A stretch of 64,000 bases of DNA from IMG/VR virus record IMGVR_UViG_3300023174_005338, positions 62,001 to 126,000 of that record; one strand, written 5' to 3'. Made by a program: the position numbers and the translations under genes. This document shows, one piece after another, positions 4,130-62,075 of the stretch. The notes below the pieces were generated by a model, which searched no databases, was not told the DNA's origin, and saw nothing but the letters and a program-made list of their open reading frames with translations. Every line of letters starts with the position of its first letter. Position 1 is the first letter of the stretch.

Positions 4130-5161
4130 ATGAATACACTAAAGCGTATTGGTTTCTGTTGCAAATGGCTCAATGATCCTAGCGAATGCGGGGGTATGAA
4201 GGTCAATGCCAAAGACCGTGATCTCAACGGACGAAGCACCACCATGCGTTGGTTGCGTGAGCATCCGGCCGAAGCTGAACAGCGCCAGTGGGACATCATG
4301 AATCACAACACCTCAGCCGCGGTCAAGTTGATTGAGCGTGTGGCCACACTACCAGCCAACCGTAGAATGGTTCGTTTGGGTTCGGAAATGTTACAGGGCT
4401 ACACAGAGAAAGATTGGAAAGCCTGGTGGCAACGTCAGGAAATACAAGATCATTGTGAACGTATTTTTGCACCTATTGGAGAAACAGCCCGCAGACTGGA
4501 TGTGCGACTCAGCTTCCACCCTGGACAGTTCTGTGTGTTGGGTTCAGAGTCAGAAGAAATAGTAAATAGAAGCATAGAGGAGTTTGAATATCATGCGGAT
4601 ATGGCCAGATGGATGGGTTATGGGAAATCCTTCCAGGATTTTAAAATCAACGTACACATATCAGGTAAAGCCGGTGCCGCCGGTGCGCGACGTTCGTATG
4701 GACGACTCAGCCCCACAGCCCGCAGTTGTATTACATTTGAAAACGAAGAAATAACACATGGCCTGGATCGTTGTCTTGAACTTGCTGATATTGTGCCTAC
4801 TGTGCTTGATGTTCACCATCACTGGATCAAGACTGGAGAATATATTTCGCCCACAGATGATCGTGTTGCGAGGGTTGTGGACAGTTGGCGTGGTGTTCGT
4901 CCTGCTATGCACTACAGCGTTAGCCGTGAAGACGTACTTGTTGACCATGCCGTTCACCATAAACCAGATCATGCAGTTTTGCTAGAGTCTGGTCACAAGA
5001 AACAAAAACTGCGAGCACATTCAGATTTTTATTGGAACCCGGCAGTCACCGACTGGGCCCTGAGTTTTTGGTCCAAGTTTGACATACAGTGCGAGGCCAA
5101 AGGCAAGAACCTGGCCAGTGAGCAAGTTTACCGTCGTGCGGTAGAACTGGGGTTGGTATGA
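4130..5161 (+). CDS. uvsE: UV damage endonuclease
   Basis: IGFCCK, RLSFHPGQF, INVHISG, ITFENEE, LDVHHHW, RAHSD motifs. Confidence 0.93.
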   Translation: MNTLKRIGFCCKWLNDPSECGGMKVNAKDRDLNGRSTTMRWLREHPAEAEQRQWDIMNHNTSAAVKLIERVATLPANRRMVRLGSEMLQGYTEKDWKAWWQRQEIQDHCERIFAPIGETARRLDVRLSFHPGQFCVLGSESEEIVNRSIEEFEYHADMARWMGYGKSFQDFKINVHISGKAGAAGARRSYGRLSPTARSCITFENEEITHGLDRCLELADIVPTVLDVHHHWIKTGEYISPTDDRVARVVDSWRGVRPAMHYSVSREDVLVDHAVHHKPDHAVLLESGHKKQKLRAHSDFYWNPAVTDWALSFWSKFDIQCEAKGKNLASEQVYRRAVELGLV

Positions 5162-5337
5162 GCATGGGATTTGGTGTCTTTTTACTTGTGGTGATATTTG
5201 GTGCATTTGTTGTCACTCACATGATCAAGATGGACGGCGATGTCGACAGCATAGAACTGGCCGCAACACTAGCCTTGATCCTGTTCTCGGGATTTGTGAT
5301 CTATTGTGCCATGTATTTCTTGCGTGGCCTGTTATGA
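5158..5337 (+). CDS. Small two-TM membrane protein
   Basis: Manual translation MSMGFGVFLLVVIFGAFVV...MYFLRGLL; ATGA coupling at both ends. Confidence 0.6.
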   Translation: MSMGFGVFLLVVIFGAFVVTHMIKMDGDVDSIELAATLALILFSGFVIYCAMYFLRGLL

Positions 5338-5627
5338 AGAAGATCGTTCAGGATGTTGTACAATATGTGCGACACGATTGGCACAGCAATCGCTTGAGAT
5401 TCTGTGCTGAAGTGTTTGCCTGGGCGTGCAGTGTAGTATCGGCTGTGATATTTGCCGCCACAGTTCCTCACATACCAGTGGTGCCCTTGTACACAATCTT
5501 TATCGCGGGCTGTGTCAGCAGTGCCTGGGCCTGTTACACCCGAAGGAGTTTTGGCTTGATGGCCAATTCGGTGTTCTTGGTCATCATCGACGGAATAGGC
5601 CTGGTCAGATATTTCTTGGTTAATTAG
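5334..5627 (+). CDS. Membrane protein
   Basis: MKKIVQDVVQ...; three hydrophobic segments. Confidence 0.7.
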   Translation: MKKIVQDVVQYVRHDWHSNRLRFCAEVFAWACSVVSAVIFAATVPHIPVVPLYTIFIAGCVSSAWACYTRRSFGLMANSVFLVIIDGIGLVRYFLVN

Positions 5628-5818
5628 GCTTTTGGAGTCTTAGGGGCACGTGGCTTTTTGACTGCAGGCTTTTTGACTGCAGGCTTTTTGGCCGCTGGTT
5701 TCTTTTCTTCTGCCACAGTTTTGGGGAATGGAAAATGTTCAGAACCTTCGACCTTGTAAGGTGCCTCAGTAGGTTCGGCAGGTTTTGCTCCAAAAATTCG
5801 CTTTAATAATGATAGCAT
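5624..5818 (-). CDS. Small basic protein with KKPA repeats
   Basis: AGGAG RBS; MLSLLKRIFG...KKPAAKKPAVKKPAVKK encoded by a 15-bp tandem repeat. Confidence 0.7.
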   Translation of the reverse strand: MLSLLKRIFGAKPAEPTEAPYKVEGSEHFPFPKTVAEEKKPAAKKPAVKKPAVKKPRAPKTPKA

Positions 5819-5969
5819 GGTAGTTCTCCTTGTAGAATATTTATTTTCTGTTGGATCATTATGTTTTGTTATTATGTGGCACTGCACAATATAAATACAA
5901 AGTCAGTGTTTTCACTGAGAGATTTTGATCACGAGTCAAAATCAAAATACAACCCAAAAGGAAAAAACA

Positions 5970-6089
5970 ATGAAATCAATCTTATCAACAGTATGGCAAT
6001 TCATGTGCGATCTTGGTCATGCCAGTTATGCTGCACACTTGGCACGCAATGGACAGGTGCAACGAGCACAGTCCATGTATAAAAAATAA
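5970..6089 (+). CDS. 39-aa small protein
   Basis: AAGGA RBS; MKSILSTVWQFMCDLGHASYAAHLARNGQVQRAQSMYKK; stop overlaps the GNAT start. Confidence 0.6.
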   Translation: MKSILSTVWQFMCDLGHASYAAHLARNGQVQRAQSMYKK

Positions 6090-6643
6090 TGTACACCACC
6101 CAGTTTCTAGACTCTGACAAATACTACCGCTACGGCGAATGGTTACAGGAGCAAGATTCTGATACCCTACAGATTTATTTTGGCAGCGCAGGTCCTGGTA
6201 TCGTAGAAAGCCTCATGCTACGCATAGAAGCTGAGCCAGATCGGCATGCTTTCCTGGTGGCCGCCAACTGCGCGGGCTGGCTGGGCACCTTGCACATAGC
6301 AGAAGTCACTCCAGCACAGGTAGAATTTGGCTTAATAGTCCATAAAAACTATCGTGGACTGGGCATTGGAGATGATCTGCTGACACAAGGCATAACTTGG
6401 GCACGCAATCGTGGCTATAGCGAACTGTTCATGCACTGTTTGACCCACAATGCAACCATAAGGCACCTGTGTTACAAGCACGGACTAGAACCACGAGATC
6501 TGGGCGGCGACAGTGAAACCAAGATTGCACTAGCACCTGCTACCTGGATCACGGTCAATCAAGAACTGGTCACACGTCAACGCAACCTGTTCTATATGGC
6601 TCTGCAACAAACTTGGCGGCCGTTCCAGGAAAATTTGGGCTAA
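6089..6643 (+). CDS. GNAT family N-acetyltransferase
   Basis: Motif A VHKNYRGLGIG and HCLTHN. Confidence 0.85.
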   Translation: MYTTQFLDSDKYYRYGEWLQEQDSDTLQIYFGSAGPGIVESLMLRIEAEPDRHAFLVAANCAGWLGTLHIAEVTPAQVEFGLIVHKNYRGLGIGDDLLTQGITWARNRGYSELFMHCLTHNATIRHLCYKHGLEPRDLGGDSETKIALAPATWITVNQELVTRQRNLFYMALQQTWRPFQENLG

Positions 6644-6650
6644 GTAAAAC

Positions 6651-7367
6651 ATGGGCCTACTCATCTACATCCTGGTGATGACACACATCACCATAGCCTG
6701 TGTCACACTTTACTTGCACCGCAGTCAAGCACATAGAGGGGTATCATTTGACCCACGTGTGACACACTTCATGAGATTCTGGCTGTGGCTGACCACAGGC
6801 ATGGTCACCAAGCAGTGGGTGGCCACACATAGAAAACATCACAGATTCACCGACAAAGAAGGTGACCCGCACAGCCCACAAAATGAAGGAATCTGGCAGA
6901 TCTTGCTGGGCGGTGCTTTCTACTATGCCTGGGCAGCCCAAGACAAAAAAATGGTCGAACAGTATGGCGTGGGCACACCTGATGACTGGATGGAACGCAA
7001 CATCTATACTCCATTCAATTGGCTGGGTATTGTGATCATGTTCTTTATTAATTGCATGATATTTGGCTGGGCCTGGGGGTGGTTGGCCTGGGGGTGGCAG
7101 ATGATCTGGATACCCTTATGGGCCGCTGGAGTCATCAACGGCTTAGGTCACTGGTGGGGATATCGTAACACAGCCACCAACGACTATTCAACCAACATTG
7201 TGCCTTGGGCATTTTTCATCGGCGGCGAAGAATTACACAACAATCATCACGCTGATCCGGCTAGCCCTAAATTAAGCCAAAAACCCTGGGAATGGGATCT
7301 GGGTTGGACCTACATCCGACTGCTGGAACGCTACAATCTGGCCACACTTCGCGAAAGGTCAGTTTAG
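6651..7367 (+). CDS. Membrane fatty-acid (acyl-CoA delta-9 type) desaturase
   Basis: Three His boxes HRSQAH, HRKHH, HNNHH plus TM segments. Confidence 0.92.
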   Translation: MGLLIYILVMTHITIACVTLYLHRSQAHRGVSFDPRVTHFMRFWLWLTTGMVTKQWVATHRKHHRFTDKEGDPHSPQNEGIWQILLGGAFYYAWAAQDKKMVEQYGVGTPDDWMERNIYTPFNWLGIVIMFFINCMIFGWAWGWLAWGWQMIWIPLWAAGVINGLGHWWGYRNTATNDYSTNIVPWAFFIGGEELHNNHHADPASPKLSQKPWEWDLGWTYIRLLERYNLATLRERSV

Positions 7368-7409
7368 CCAAAATCTTCTGAAACGAGTAATATAGGTATA
7401 TAATAATTG

Positions 7410-7438
7410 TTGCACTGCAATAAATATTCTTGTATAAT
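7410..7438 (+). promoter_or_regulatory. Promoter overlapped by a TTGCA-C-TGCAA inverted repeat
   Basis: TTGCAC-N17-TATAAT upstream of the phasin-like gene. Confidence 0.6.
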
Positions 7439-7476
7439 ACTAGAGTAGTAAACCATTTCAACATAGGAGAAACCAA

Positions 7477-7743
7477 ATGGAATTCAACAAAATCGACTTC
7501 GCAAAATTATTTGATGTAACTGTTGCCATTGACAACATGCACAAAGGTGTCACAAACATGATCACTTACATGCCCGAGCAAGTTCGCTCCAGTGCCCACA
7601 CTGTGGTAGATGCACAGTTCGGTTTGATCCGCACAACCAACAAGGCCGTGAAAGAGTTTGCTGAAACTGTAGAATCTGTAGCCAAAGAAGCACAAAAAGA
7701 AATCACCAAAACCATCGAAAAGGCCACCAAAGTATCTGCCTAA
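7477..7743 (+). CDS. Phasin-like helical protein
   Basis: 88 aa, predicted all-helical and amphipathic, Ala/Thr/Glu/Lys-rich; strong AGGAG RBS; family assignment by composition only. Confidence 0.5.
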   Translation: MEFNKIDFAKLFDVTVAIDNMHKGVTNMITYMPEQVRSSAHTVVDAQFGLIRTTNKAVKEFAETVESVAKEAQKEITKTIEKATKVSA

Positions 7744-7761
7744 TTTGTCGTTTTACAACAT

Positions 7762-7785
7762 AAAAAGCCCCCATGGGGGCTTTTT
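7762..7785. terminator. Bidirectional intrinsic terminator
   Basis: AAAAA-GCCCC-CATG-GGGGC-TTTTT. Confidence 0.85.
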
Positions 7786-7871: not shown

Positions 7872-8450
7872 ATGCCAATCATTCAAGATCAGGACAATTC
7901 CGAAAAAGAACCATCACGCCTGTTGCAGGAAGCCGGCATGTATGTGTTCATGGGCGAAGTCAACGATGACACCATCAAGCCCATCATCGAGTGGATCTTG
8001 GTAGAAAATCATGTAGTAAAAAAGAAGAAAAAAGAGTTGTTGCTCATGGTCTGTAGCGAAGGCGGCAGCGTAGAAGATGCCTTTGCCTTGATCGACGTGA
8101 TGAAAGCATCGAGCATAGCAATCAAGACCGTGGGTCTGGGCGTGATAGCCAGTGCCGGACTCATGATATTCCTAGCTGGACATGCAGGACGCAGGGTGCT
8201 GACACCCAACACTTCAATACTGAGCCATCAGTATAGCAACAGTCACGAAGGCAAACATCACGAACTGTTTGCCATAGCCAAAGAACACAATCTCATACAG
8301 TGGCGCATGCTGGAACATTATCGTGCGGCCACGGGCTTGGACACTGACACTATCCTGGAAAAATTGTTGCCACCCAGTGATATCTACCTGTCAGCAGAAG
8401 AAGCACTAGAATTAAAAATCTGCGACTACGTCAGCGACTTGAAAAAATAA
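7872..8450 (+). CDS. ClpP-family protease (divergent copy)
   Basis: CSEGGSV, catalytic Ser in IASAG, His in LSHQY, Asp in SDIYLSAEEA. Confidence 0.85.
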   Translation: MPIIQDQDNSEKEPSRLLQEAGMYVFMGEVNDDTIKPIIEWILVENHVVKKKKKELLLMVCSEGGSVEDAFALIDVMKASSIAIKTVGLGVIASAGLMIFLAGHAGRRVLTPNTSILSHQYSNSHEGKHHELFAIAKEHNLIQWRMLEHYRAATGLDTDTILEKLLPPSDIYLSAEEALELKICDYVSDLKK

Positions 8451-10022
8451 TTACCGTTGTCTTTTACGGCCCAGGGTTTTTTCTGTGCCGTATTTTTTTG
8501 GCAGTTCAGGAGCAGCCTTGACAGCACTGCGTTTTTGTGTGACCAGGTCAAGATCTTTTGTTTTTGTTTTGACTTTTTTCTCTGTGCCTGTGTCAACTTC
8601 TGGGCCCATGTCATCGTTACTTTTTCCTGGGCTGACCTCAACTGAAATTTTACCTTTGGTAGGGTCTGAGGCAGATCCTTTGGTTTTAAGGCGTACTTCT
8701 CCAGAGATAGTAGCGGGCCAAAATGCTTCCGTGACCAATTTGTTGCCTTTGACATTGGTGTAAAGTTGTATAAAATTGTAGCCAAGACTTTGGATAATAG
8801 CTGGACGGAATCCTTCAATGACTTCTTGATTGTTGACCATGTCTATGACGTCTTTGGTCACTGCATACCAAACTTTTCCGCCGTCGGTATTGGTGCTTTC
8901 TTGTACCTTGGGCGATAGACGTTTATTGAATACCGACATTATGCCTCGTGGCATTGGCTTGCCGGTCTTGTAAGAATTCAAGGCAACCGCAATCAAGGCG
9001 TCATCAAATGGCAAGAGTTTTTTGTAGGCCGCCGGAACCTTGTCGGGGACATTTTTGTTCATCCAGTTCATTATTACAAATGGCTGGGTAAATGCACTGT
9101 TACTAGGATCCGTGGCTTCTTTGTAAAAACTGTAGGCTTCGGGATATTTCTTTTGCACATTGGCCGGTATCTTGATACTGCTCAAGGCAGGTGGTGCTCC
9201 CTTTCCTGCAGCCTTGCTAGAAATTTTGACAGCATGTCCAGTATCATCATTAACCACGCTGAAACTGTCGGCCAATGGATTGTCGCTGGCCTTGGGAAAA
9301 TACATGATCATGTCATTGAGATTGGCTCCTACAAACTTGTCAAATTCTTCTCGACTGCCGCGCTTGAACCGAGTAGCTCCTGACAACAGGCCTAACACTC
9401 CAATGTACTCGCTGGCGTACAGTTCGATGGCTTTAATTTCGGCCGGAGTTAAATTTTTAGGAAATTCTGGAACATTGCCTTGTGATGCCTGTCTGGACAT
9501 GTAAATCACTGCATCGCCTATACGTCCCAATTTTTGCATTTGTGGACTGTTGGAAATTTTTTCATACATTTCACCAGCAGGGAATCCACCGGCTTGCAAT
9601 AATTGGTCTACGCTGTTACCAAAGTCTGCAACTTCTTGATCTGTGGTGTCAAAAATATCACTGCCTTTGAGCTTGATGGTTTCTGACTCTTTGCTACCAA
9701 ACTCGACTGTTTTTAATAATTCAGTGTTTTTGACTTCGCCGCCGTCGGTCGTTTTGAGACTGATACTGCCTTTGGGGCCTTTGGGACCACTTTTTAACCA
9801 TTCAGCCACTCGGTTGGCTTCTGATGGATCAATCACAACATCGCCGCCAGTGACCAGAGTAAATGGAGTGCCGTTTTGTACCTTGTATAAGAAAAGTGCT
9901 GGACGACTCATAGGCTCGCCAGTGATCGGATCTTTGACTGCACTGGCTTTGTTGGCAGGGATTTCTGGTGCACCTAAGTTGGCTTCCATTAGATTGTCTA
10001 GTAGATTGAGAATATCACGCAT
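8451..10022 (-). CDS. Hypothetical 523-aa protein, possible PD-(D/E)xK-like nuclease fold
   Basis: Long ORF; YFPKASDNPLADS...VKISSK weakly resembles a restriction-endonuclease core. Confidence 0.6.
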   Translation of the reverse strand: MRDILNLLDNLMEANLGAPEIPANKASAVKDPITGEPMSRPALFLYKVQNGTPFTLVTGGDVVIDPSEANRVAEWLKSGPKGPKGSISLKTTDGGEVKNTELLKTVEFGSKESETIKLKGSDIFDTTDQEVADFGNSVDQLLQAGGFPAGEMYEKISNSPQMQKLGRIGDAVIYMSRQASQGNVPEFPKNLTPAEIKAIELYASEYIGVLGLLSGATRFKRGSREEFDKFVGANLNDMIMYFPKASDNPLADSFSVVNDDTGHAVKISSKAAGKGAPPALSSIKIPANVQKKYPEAYSFYKEATDPSNSAFTQPFVIMNWMNKNVPDKVPAAYKKLLPFDDALIAVALNSYKTGKPMPRGIMSVFNKRLSPKVQESTNTDGGKVWYAVTKDVIDMVNNQEVIEGFRPAIIQSLGYNFIQLYTNVKGNKLVTEAFWPATISGEVRLKTKGSASDPTKGKISVEVSPGKSNDDMGPEVDTGTEKKVKTKTKDLDLVTQKRSAVKAAPELPKKYGTEKTLGRKRQR

Positions 10023-61493: not shown

Positions 61494-62075
61494 ATGAGTA
61501 AAACTATTGATCAAGCCATATTCCGCGACGGAGAAGATTATTGGCAGGTGGCTGAAAATATCAAAGATATCTATCTTAGCGAAGGCAGCCTGCTGACCTT
61601 GTTAGACTTCGAGCGTGTGCTGGACGAGCTGGATTTGTATGCTTTCCGAAACTGGCAGATTGGGGAACTAGTAAGTGGACCCAACATTGGCAAATATCGT
61701 GTGACCTGCATATTCATGTGGCCCGAGAAACTCATGCCCGACCCACGTGGTGCCCGTAGATTATTGCCCTTTGACTGCGAAGTAAAATTCAAAAAAACTG
61801 CCATGAAAGTGCCCATGAAAATCACGGATCCGTCGGACTATCGTCCTGGCACAAAAAAAGCAAGGCTCATAGAAAAGAAAATCTGGCTGGTGCAGATCAC
61901 CATGCCCAAGGCTCTCATGAGCGACATACGCACAGGTTCAGTGGAATTAGAAGATCAAGACATTGATTTAGAAGATCTAGATGATGCTTATGAACAGGAT
62001 CTGGATCAAGAAAGTTATCAAAGCGACCAACAGGCACAAAATGCACAACAAACACTCCAACAACCAGCTATTTGA
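61494..62075 (+). CDS. Conserved hypothetical late protein
   Basis: ATAAATA box 5 nt upstream; LDFERVLDELD...MPDPRGARRLL. Confidence 0.75.
   Translation: MSKTIDQAIFRDGEDYWQVAENIKDIYLSEGSLLTLLDFERVLDELDLYAFRNWQIGELVSGPNIGKYRVTCIFMWPEKLMPDPRGARRLLPFDCEVKFKKTAMKVPMKITDPSDYRPGTKKARLIEKKIWLVQITMPKALMSDIRTGSVELEDQDIDLEDLDDAYEQDLDQESYQSDQQAQNAQQTLQQPAI

Follow-up and report, generated by a model that had tools for sequence, protein, structure and literature searches.

Bacteriophages can carry metabolic genes, and the locus described here raises the question of whether a phage can also tie such genes to the carbon-storage state of its host. The locus lies in a 337-kb freshwater jumbo phage genome (IMG/VR record IMGVR_UViG_3300023174_005338). 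The window analyzed is a 64,000-nucleotide stretch covering positions 62,001 to 126,000 of that record, and all coordinates refer to it. An initial annotation, made from the sequence alone, described a coupled run of a 39-residue ORF, a GNAT, and a delta-9-type desaturase, followed by a separately promoted phasin-like gene, with a shared motif upstream of both units. It proposed that these motifs are sites for PhaR, which represses phasin genes and senses polyhydroxyalkanoate granules, and that the phage carries a PhaR-responsive module linking poly-hydroxybutyrate (PHB) granule status to membrane fluidity or granule mobilization. The ORFs, both motif copies, and their coordinates are as that annotation described, and the observation is confirmed. 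Its interpretation is supported in part: the enzyme calls, the two-unit architecture, and the reading of the motif as a PhaR-type box hold, while the phasin call is not confirmed and the physiological link is inference. The phage probably couples these genes to host carbon storage, although PhaR binding was not assayed.

Gene content of the locus

The first unit begins with a conserved 39-residue peptide gene (5970-6089, plus strand), whose stop overlaps the GNAT start (TAATG). The peptide shows 50-95% identity in 13 loci, and its alignment contains invariant W, C, G, YAA, and LAR positions, but family searches returned no hit. The 5′ UTR of the operon contains a conserved stem-loop (5921-5943, plus strand; GATTTTGA-TCACGAG-TCAAAATC), and RNAalifold analysis of 10 loci shows compensatory changes in 5 of 7 pairs. 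A search of Rfam gave only a sub-threshold freshwater-2 hit in the window, which is not reproduced in relatives.

The GNAT N-acetyltransferase (6089-6643, plus strand) matches PF00583 (E 3.5e-10; 40.6 bits against a cut-off of 20.7), PF13508, PF13302, and phrog_1249, and its translation contains the acetyl-CoA binding motif RGLGIG. Its substrate is unknown, and a homolog search returned only the same phage clade and gave no substrate clue.

The third gene (6651-7367, plus strand) encodes a DesA-type membrane fatty-acid (Delta-9, phospholipid) desaturase that consists of the catalytic core only (238 residues) and carries the three histidine boxes HRSQAH, HRKHH, and HNNHH. It matches PF00487 (E 1e-16; 61.8 bits against a cut-off of 29.7) and the NCBIfam DesA family NF049918 (E 2e-111; 372.8 bits; profile positions 10-241 of 385). 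The latter score falls just under the equivalog cut-off of 400 because the C-terminal third is absent. The protein is 58% identical to Rivibacter DesA over 233 residues, and its nearest bacterial homologs are in Burkholderiales and Xanthomonadales.

The second unit consists of an 88-residue ORF (7477-7743, plus strand) with a strong AGGAG ribosome-binding site at 7465-7469. It is closed by a palindromic, G+C-rich intrinsic-terminator-like hairpin with a T-run at 7762-7785 (AAAAAGCCCCC-AT-GGGGGCTTTTT), which was recovered as a 28-nt self-complementary match. The synteny of small ORF, GNAT, desaturase, and 88-residue gene holds even at the level of the family member P0122. Transcribed divergently from the first unit is a 64-residue lysine-rich ORF (5627-5818, minus strand; pI 10.2) with a KKPAAKKPAVKKPAVKKP tail. 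It is conserved in relatives, has no Pfam hit, is preceded by an ATAAATA promoter element at 5844-5838 on the minus strand, and is a possible third target of the same control site. No alternative genetic code was used. Searches of GenBank phages gave no DNA or protein match, and the neighboring genes of relatives had no Pfam hits.

PhaR-type sites at the two promoters

The motif copies are TGTGGCACTGCACAAT at 5875-5890 and TTGCACTGCAA at 7410-7420, and they fall within two larger sites, O1 and O2. O2 (7406-7424; ATTGTTGCACTGCAATAAA; core TGCACTGCA at 7411-7419) covers the -35 box (TTGCAC, 7410-7415) of a TTGCAC-17-TATAAT promoter whose -10 box is at 7433-7438, and it lies just downstream of a second TATAAT at 7399-7404. 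O1 (5873-5891; TATGTGGCACTGCACAATA) is weaker, with one perfect GCA half-site and one GGC half-site, and lies between the divergent promoters immediately upstream of TATAAATA (5890-5897). Both sites thus overlap or abut core promoter elements, which are predicted rather than mapped.

Occurrence alone is not beyond chance. The shared 8-mer core GCACTGCA occurs 4 times in the window against 4.5 expected, TGC-N3-GCA occurs 21 times against 29 expected, and the published PhaR patterns occur 3 times against 1.1-1.4 expected. These plain motif counts are rejected as evidence on their own, and even a site of at least 22 bits is expected about 0.25 times per simulated genome.

What is beyond chance is position and conservation, and the comparative evidence is strong. 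TGC-N3-GCA is the most common gapped word in 34 Burkholderiales phasin promoters (33 of 34), where it usually occurs as two sites 54-61 bp apart. A weight matrix built from those bacterial sites alone gives its best hit in the whole 337-kb phage genome at O2, with 22.3 and 20.9 bits on the two strands against a training median of 21.2, and scores O1 at 16.2 bits. O2 at 7408-7420 is an exact match to the footprinted Herbaspirillum seropedicae PhbF/PhaR motif TG[N]TGC[N]3GCAA (PMC3206438). It is one mismatch from the 17-mer Ralstonia eutropha PhaR palindrome YTKNTGCRNYGCANMAR, for which BS1 lies next to the -35 box and BS2 at the transcription start (PMC12849132). By hand count, O1 has three mismatches to the same palindrome. 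The matrix found no strong hit upstream of the phaR genes of five Burkholderiales genomes, run as a positive control, and it therefore captures phasin-promoter sites rather than the whole PhaR regulon.

Absence of the motif upstream of orthologs had been set out in advance as grounds for discarding the PhaR reading, and a scan of related loci (numbered with the prefix L) found it conserved. Upstream of the 88-residue gene, orthologous and remote loci score 21.7-22.3 bits in six loci, 15.3 in L007, 20.3 in L141, 15.9 in L140, 17.6 in L148, and 19.5 in L150. Upstream of the small-ORF unit, 7 of 9 loci score 12.6-16.2 bits and L141 scores 12.8, against a null for 130-nt windows with a 99th percentile of 9.6 and a 99.9th of 17.6. 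O1 is imperfect in every ortholog, and because the loci are related, the conservation counts are not independent events. The site type is kept at both promoters across diverged orthologous loci while the center and flanks change; centers vary (ACT, AGT, GTT, GGT) but obey the published R-N-Y rule. In 77.6 kb from nine related phage loci, 14 of 15 matrix hits of at least 12 bits fall in the two 135-nt promoter windows. Some orthologs (L012, L015, L003) have N4- or N6-spaced palindromes that the N3 model does not score, and in L012 and L015 one site is at the -35 box and one just after the -10 box. The bacterial two-site spacing of about 57 bp is not reproduced.

The phage genome has no PHB_acc_N or PHB_acc hit, and host PhaR is thus the likely binder. 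Desaturase relatives point to Burkholderiales, and all 5 such genomes tested, which carry the nearest desA homologs, have PhaR and phasins. The host itself is only inferred, so these genomes leave undecided whether the infected cell contains PhaR. Only 1 of 43 bacterial desA genes carries the box, indicating that the phage site was not simply imported with desA.

The 88-residue protein

The 88-residue protein is the most conserved gene product of the module, with 186 homologs at 76% identity or more, and belongs to a narrow family confined to phage-like contigs, with only 16 representatives among 1.84 billion proteins. Metatranscriptome contigs cover 7465-7745, although such contigs cannot prove transcription. 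The protein is small, all-helical by prediction, and amphipathic: its AF2 model is a helical hairpin with helices at residues 8-30 and 34-87 (pLDDT 80), and its hydrophobic moment of 0.6 is reached by 0.6% of shuffles. These features are not specific to phasins.

The initial annotation called the protein phasin-like on composition only, and named comparison with Phasin_2 (PF09361) and the predicted fold as the checks on that call. The protein gives no Pfam Phasin_2 hit at E up to 1, and a six-frame search of the genome gives none; the best family member, P0124, scores 19.2 bits against a gathering threshold of 24.9. Profile-profile alignment with hhalign gives a probability of 12%, P 0.0024, and a score of 23.8, which exceeds 120 shuffled nulls, but the reversed alignment scores 20.2. 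Likewise, median scores against a phasin HMM are 11.2 bits for real, 8.4 for reversed, and 0.9 for shuffled sequences, indicating that the similarity is mainly compositional; these comparisons do not settle homology in either direction. Foldseek against PDB, a shape search of the ESM Atlas, and a wide VIA-align search returned only generic helical hairpins, which is uninformative rather than evidence against a phasin. PDB sequence searches gave nothing significant, and no similarity of the family to PhaR was found. Other PHB genes (depolymerases, Phasin PF05597, and Phasin_2) were sought in the phage and not found. No protein complex was modeled, as no protein-protein binding is claimed.

Interpretation of the module

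The explanation favored here, with moderate confidence, is that the region is a conserved two-promoter module whose promoters both carry operators of the PhaR/PhbF type and which is repressed by PhaR in a PHB-storing Burkholderiales host. The first unit is driven from the region around O1, and the second carries O2 over its -35 box. In this view, host PhaR binds O1 and O2 and blocks RNA polymerase, as it does at phaP1. When the host is making PHB, PhaR would be drawn onto nascent granules and the phage genes released, coupling expression of the desaturase operon and the small protein to carbon storage. O2 is near-consensus while O1 is consistently one half-site short, which suggests graded control. 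The 88-residue protein most likely acts at a hydrophobic surface, either PHB granules or membrane/lipid, but is not a demonstrable member of the phasin family. The gene identities, the motif match and its genome-wide rank, its conservation, and the absence of a phage PhaR come directly from the analysis, whereas PhaR binding, host identity, the derepression logic, and granule binding are inferred; neither relief of repression by PHB nor granule association was measured.

Alternative explanations were considered. It is unlikely, though possible, that the palindromes are operators for a different regulator, phage-encoded or another host factor, and resemble PhaR boxes by convergence. The motif is short, its core is not enriched in the window, N4 and N6 spacing variants occur in some orthologs, and spacing relative to the promoter differs from the bacterial BS1/BS2 layout. 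However, a matrix trained only on bacterial phasin promoters selects O2 as the best site in 337 kb, the TG-N-TGC...GCAA flanks and R-N-Y center match the published Burkholderiales consensus, and no PhaR-like gene is found in the phage. Still less likely is the absence of any repressor, with the conserved sequence forming part of a strong promoter or a DNA/RNA hairpin that affects transcription or mRNA stability. O2 does contain the -35 hexamer, other TGTTGCA-17-TATAAT promoters exist in the genome, and the (G/A)TAAATA element next to both sites is a genome-wide promoter-like motif (12 seen against 1.0 expected) that is not part of the specific signal. Yet the composite TGT[TG]GC...GCA...TAAATA pattern occurs only at these two places in the genome (2 seen against 0.25 expected), both half-sites are conserved rather than the -35 half alone, the O1 palindrome sits between the -35 and -10 positions rather than forming a -35 box, and a stem of 3-5 bp is too weak for a structural role.

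A more plausible but still tentative alternative accepts regulation by PhaR, used only as a sensor of a carbon-rich host, and holds that the 88-residue protein has nothing to do with PHB granules. The protein could instead be a membrane- or lipid-surface partner of the desaturase, a structural or scaffolding protein, or an inhibitor of a host protein. The lack of a Phasin_2 hit, the score retained on reversal, the low hhalign probability, the generic fold, and the tight linkage to a membrane desaturase favor this view, and chance-level hits go to apolipoprotein and perilipin families as well. On the other hand, 3 of 10 family members give Phasin_2 as a top sub-threshold hit, two of them in the same register, and the nearest named language-model clusters are all PHA-related (Phasin_2, PHB_acc, PHA_synth_III_E). 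In bacteria the strongest PhaR boxes sit in front of phasin genes, and the remote family members at L148 and L150 keep the box even without a desaturase neighbor. A bolder and doubtful possibility is that a clade of freshwater jumbo phages plugs into the PHB-granule circuit at both ends, using host PhaR as a sensor and making a minimal phasin mimic, a new 88-residue family, that coats granules. This would retitrate PhaR and host phasins and so redirect stored carbon and acetyl-CoA, together with membrane-lipid remodeling, toward phage production.

PHB is a major carbon and energy store of abundant freshwater and soil Burkholderiales. If phages read the PhaR/granule signal, infection outcome and auxiliary-gene expression would depend on host storage status, a link between viral lysis and carbon storage that has not been described in the literature searched. 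The locus also offers a compact natural promoter pair that is putatively PhaR-responsive, a new and very conserved 88-residue amphipathic protein family that is a candidate minimal granule- or lipid-binding tag, and a minimal DesA-type desaturase core.

Comparison with known systems

The desaturase belongs to the same NCBIfam family as Pseudomonas aeruginosa DesA (PMC10634369), which aerobically desaturates acyl chains of existing membrane phospholipids, and shares its three His boxes. The phage protein lacks the C-terminal 145 residues or so of bacterial DesA (profile positions 242-385). Cyanophage-encoded lipid desaturases (PMC5776448) are likewise membrane fatty-acid desaturases carried as auxiliary metabolic genes, presumably to adjust host membrane lipids during infection. 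They differ in desaturase lineage, host group, and habitat, whereas the present gene is DesA-type with nearest relatives in Burkholderiales, is coupled to a GNAT and a 39-residue peptide, and sits behind a host-repressor-type box.

Like phasins (PhaP1, Phasin_2), the 88-residue protein is small, predicted to be all-helical, and strongly amphipathic, lies behind a PhaR-type box promoter, and shows weak sub-threshold sequence similarity. It is half the length of the Burkholderiales phasins found here (172-194 residues).

The sites themselves most closely resemble the PhaR operators at the phaP1 promoter of R. eutropha/Cupriavidus necator (PMC12849132) and those of the PhbF regulon of H. seropedicae (PMC3206438). 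The palindrome is of the same type (TG-N-TGC-RNY-GCA-A with conserved TGC/GCA triplets), the sites overlap or abut the -35/-10 region in a manner that fits repression by occlusion, and the downstream gene encodes a small amphipathic helical protein. They differ in lying in a lytic-type jumbo phage rather than a bacterial chromosome, in usually numbering one per promoter instead of two about 57 bp apart, and in that one promoter drives a GNAT-desaturase operon, which is not a known PhaR target.

In concept, the module resembles cyanophage auxiliary genes under host regulators, such as PhoB boxes before pstS/phoA and NtcA sites, in which phage genes carry binding sites for a host nutrient-status regulator so that expression follows host physiology. 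No earlier report of a phage module of the present type was found in the literature searched. The module differs from the cyanophage cases in its proposed regulator, PhaR, a granule-titrated repressor, and in its signal, a carbon-storage polymer.

Genomic context and gene order

The window (bases 62001-126000) belongs to a 337,119-bp virus record with direct terminal repeats that is rated complete and has 46% G+C. The virus is a jumbo phage, and close copies of the region occur in freshwater and lake metagenomes from 11 studies. Neither the DNA nor the two key proteins have a match among 50,697 GenBank phage records.

The region consists of a run of three genes followed by a separate small gene. 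A 39-aa ORF (5970-6089) ends in TAATG, which overlaps the start of a 184-aa GNAT gene (6089-6643; PF00583, E 3.5e-10). Seven bases later, a 238-aa desaturase gene begins (6651-7367; PF00487, E 1e-16; NCBIfam DesA family NF049918, E 2e-111, 372.8 bits over profile positions 10-241 of 385). After a 109-nt spacer comes an 88-aa ORF (7477-7743) with an AGGAG ribosome-binding site and a palindromic G+C-rich hairpin with T-runs (7762-7785). TGTGGCACTGCACAAT lies at 5875-5890 and TTGCACTGCAA at 7410-7420, and the latter supplies the TTGCAC hexamer 17 nt upstream of a perfect TATAAT (7433-7438). Every sequence statement of the initial annotation, which described these genes and the two motif copies, is correct.

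Thirteen related loci from long phage contigs (up to 320 kb) keep the same order of small ORF, GNAT, desaturase, and 88-aa gene, as does a much more diverged member (P0122, at locus L141). There are occasional changes: locus L012 lacks the GNAT and has about 570 bp between a neighboring 64-aa gene and the small ORF (L012 1994-2561), while loci L003 and L006 carry an extra 326-aa gene without family hits between the desaturase and the 88-aa gene (4914-5894). The 88-aa protein is 76-93% identical across loci, where the GNAT is mostly 41-47% and the desaturase mostly 63-67% identical (84% and 95%, respectively, in L013, the nearest relative).

The flanking genes encode a UvdE-type UV endonuclease (4130-5161; PF03851, phrog_8420 E 7e-74) and a ClpP-like protease (7872-8450) with its own TTGAGT-17-TATAAT promoter; in relatives the ClpP gene lies several genes further away. 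The 523-aa minus-strand gene next to the module (8451-10022) starts MRDILNLL. A promoter very like that of the 88-aa gene (TGTTGCAGAATCTAAATAAACCCCGTATAAT plus AAGGAGA) lies at genome position 165591, outside the window, and precedes a gene starting MRDHLLDL; the two genes may be paralogues.

PhaR-type sites in the two promoters

Counted on their own, the motifs are not unusual. GCACTGCA occurs 4 times against 4.5 expected, TGC-N3-GCA occurs 21 times against 29 expected, and the published PhaR patterns occur 3 times against 1.1-1.4 expected. The case therefore had to rest on independent comparative evidence.

Conservation of the motif upstream of orthologues had been named in the initial annotation as a point on which its reading could fail. 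Upstream of the 88-aa gene, and upstream of the small ORF, every locus keeps a palindrome of the form TGT[TG]GC-N3-GCA[AC][AC]A, although some orthologues have N4- or N6-spaced palindromes (TGCGATCGCA, TGCGGCCGCA). The centre and the surrounding sequence differ between loci. The composite pattern occurs only at these two places in the 337-kb genome (2 seen against 0.25 in shuffles). In contrast, the adjacent (G/A)TAAATA is the most enriched 7-mer upstream of genes genome-wide (12 seen against 1.0 expected) and is therefore a general promoter element of this phage that is not specific to the module. As (G/A)TAAATA(C/T), it is found for example at window positions 5838-5844 (minus strand), 7420-7426, 20003, and 53307, often lies 3-6 nt after a TATAAT, and is a phage-wide promoter or transcript-start element reminiscent of T4 late TATAAATA.

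The nearest bacterial homologues of the desaturase (55-62% identity) are in Burkholderiales (Rubrivivax, Rhizobacter, Piscinibacter, Ideonella, Aquabacterium) and Xanthomonadales. The best ‘bacterial’ hit (62% identity) sits on a very short contig (L016, 2.7 kb, binned as a Bacteroidetes MAG) and is probably a mis-binned phage fragment. Phasin_2 genes were retrieved from five of these genomes and from a sample of 61 Burkholderiales genomes. In 34 phasin upstream regions, the commonest gapped word found without any prior is TGC-N3-GCA (33 of 34), which typically occurs as two sites 54-61 bp apart that flank a TTGACA/TATACT-type promoter. This is the arrangement published for R. eutropha phaP1, in which BS1 is next to the -35 box and BS2 is at the transcription start; the published palindrome is YTKNTGCRNYGCANMAR (PMC12849132). 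The footprinted H. seropedicae PhbF motif is TG[N]TGC[N]3GCAA (PMC3206438).

A 19-nt matrix built from the 60 bacterial sites alone was scanned over both strands of the phage genome. Its best hit anywhere is 7406-7424 (operator O2; 22.3 and 20.9 bits on the two strands, training median 21.2), while 5873-5891 (operator O1) scores 16.2 bits, and the other high hits lie inside coding DNA. A single hit of at least 22 bits is expected 0.25 times per simulated genome, so the rank alone is only suggestive. Site 7408-7420 matches the PhbF motif exactly and is one mismatch from the R. eutropha 17-mer. O1 has three mismatches, is one half-site short in every orthologue, and is a consistently weaker site.

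In orthologues, the best score within 130 nt upstream of the 88-aa gene is 21.7-22.3 bits in six loci and 15.3 in locus L007, and upstream of the small ORF it is 12.6-16.2 bits in seven of nine loci; null 130-nt windows have a 99th percentile of 9.6 and a 99.9th of 17.6. Remote family members also carry the site, with 20.3 and 12.8 bits in L141, 15.9 in L140, 17.6 in L148, and 19.5 in L150. Across nine related loci (77.6 kb), 14 of 15 hits of at least 12 bits fall in the two promoter windows, which make up 3% of the bases, although the loci are related and the counts are not independent events. The bacterial 57-bp two-site spacing is not reproduced. The variable centres (ACT, AGT, GTT, GGT) all obey the published R-N-Y rule.

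The phage has no PHB_acc_N or PHB_acc domain, so a host PhaR is the candidate binder. All five Burkholderiales genomes tested encode PhaR, although the phaR genes of those five genomes show no strong hit with this matrix. Bacterial desA genes do not carry the box (1 of 43; 0 of 86 control windows), and the phage site was therefore not dragged in with the desaturase.

Untranslated regions and the divergent gene

A conserved stem-loop lies in the 5′ UTR of the small-ORF/GNAT/desaturase operon (5921-5943, and at the same place in L003-L015 and L141). It has a conserved loop ((A/T)C(C)AYGAG) and covarying stems, with compensatory changes in 5 of 7 pairs, and no function is known for it. Most relatives also have a covarying hairpin followed by TCGCTTAA ahead of the ribosome-binding site of the 88-aa gene (L003 5925-5995, L007, L012, L141, L140, L139, L149), whereas the window’s own subgroup (window, L011, L013) has a shorter UTR without it. 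A sub-threshold match to Rfam RF02980, freshwater-2 RNA, at 7408-7479 (23.8 bits against a gathering score of 49.9) is driven largely by the ribosome-binding-site/ATG end and by the palindrome aligning to the first hairpin, and it is not found in relatives.

A 64-aa ORF on the minus strand (5627-5818), divergent from O1, has an N-terminal MLSLLKRIFG segment and a KKPAAKKPAVKKPAVKKP tail (pI 10.2) and is conserved in relatives. Such lysine/proline/alanine repeat tails occur in the granule-nucleoid tethers PhaM and PhaF and in H1-like proteins. Its ATAAATA promoter element lies about 30-45 nt from O1, which suggests that it may share the operator.

The 88-aa protein

The 88-aa protein belongs to a family that is large but tight, with 186 clusters at 76% identity or more. 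An exhaustive profile search of 1.84 billion representatives finds only 16 proteins, all about 70-91 aa apart from fragments and one repeat protein. Pfam, PHROGs, and NCBIfam give only chance-level hits, and a six-frame Phasin_2 search of the genome finds nothing. Three of ten remote members give Phasin_2 as a top sub-threshold hit; the best scores 19.2 bits against a cut-off of 24.9, and two hits share the same register. The nearest named language-model clusters are Phasin_2, PHB_acc, and PHA_synth_III_E, at 0.81-0.83, which is a lead only.

Alignment by hhalign against 34 phasins gives probability 12%, P 0.0024, and score 23.8; this is above 120 shuffled nulls, but a reversed alignment scores 20.2, and the comparison leaves homology to phasins undecided. 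With a phasin HMM, the family scores a median of 11.2 bits, its reversed sequences 8.4, and shuffled sequences 0.9. Most of the likeness is amphipathic periodicity, as suspected in the initial annotation, which had based its phasin call on composition. BLASTP against one phasin gives 31% identity over 52 residues (E 0.055).

AlphaFold predicts a helical hairpin (helices 8-30 and 34-87, pLDDT 80), in which the second helix is strongly amphipathic (hydrophobic moment 0.6). A phasin-like fold had also been set in advance as a criterion for the phasin call, and three fold searches return only generic hairpins, which is uninformative and not evidence against it. Membership in Phasin_2 is therefore not shown. 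However, a phasin-like way of working, as a surface-active helix expressed from a PhaR-box promoter, remains plausible.

Contigs of one freshwater metatranscriptome library cover 7465-7745, which is the 88-aa gene. Contigs do not prove transcription or give transcript ends. The same library also has pieces of the GNAT and desaturase genes.

The desaturase, GNAT, and 39-aa peptide

The desaturase keeps the three His boxes and is 58% identical to Rivibacter DesA over 233 residues, but it lacks the C-terminal 145 residues or so of the bacterial protein. In one bacterial DesA (L023 3923-5146), this C-terminal part gives a faint DDE_Tnp_ISL3 (transposase) Pfam hit at E 2e-5. DesA desaturates acyl chains of existing membrane phospholipids (PMC10634369). 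The GNAT has no informative relatives, and the 39-aa peptide is conserved but has no family.

Proposed regulation and comparison with known systems

In the proposed mechanism, host PhaR would occupy O2, which overlaps the -35 box, and O1, which lies just before the -10-like element and between divergent promoters, and would thereby repress both units. During PHB synthesis, PhaR would move to the granules and the units would be expressed. The phage would then make a phospholipid desaturase, an acetyltransferase, and an abundant amphipathic protein specifically in carbon-storing hosts. The gene identities and the identity, rank, and conservation of the motif are results of this analysis, whereas PhaR binding, the host, and the physiological rationale are inferred. 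The initial interpretation, a PhaR-responsive phage module with a phasin-like gene, is thus partly supported, since the PhaR-type motif is conserved in orthologues but the phasin assignment is not shown.

A PhaR-type box in a phage, and this 88-aa family, are not described in the literature that was searched. The broader categories to which the module would belong are already known: phage genes are found under host nutrient regulators, and phage desaturases are known from cyanophages (PMC5776448).
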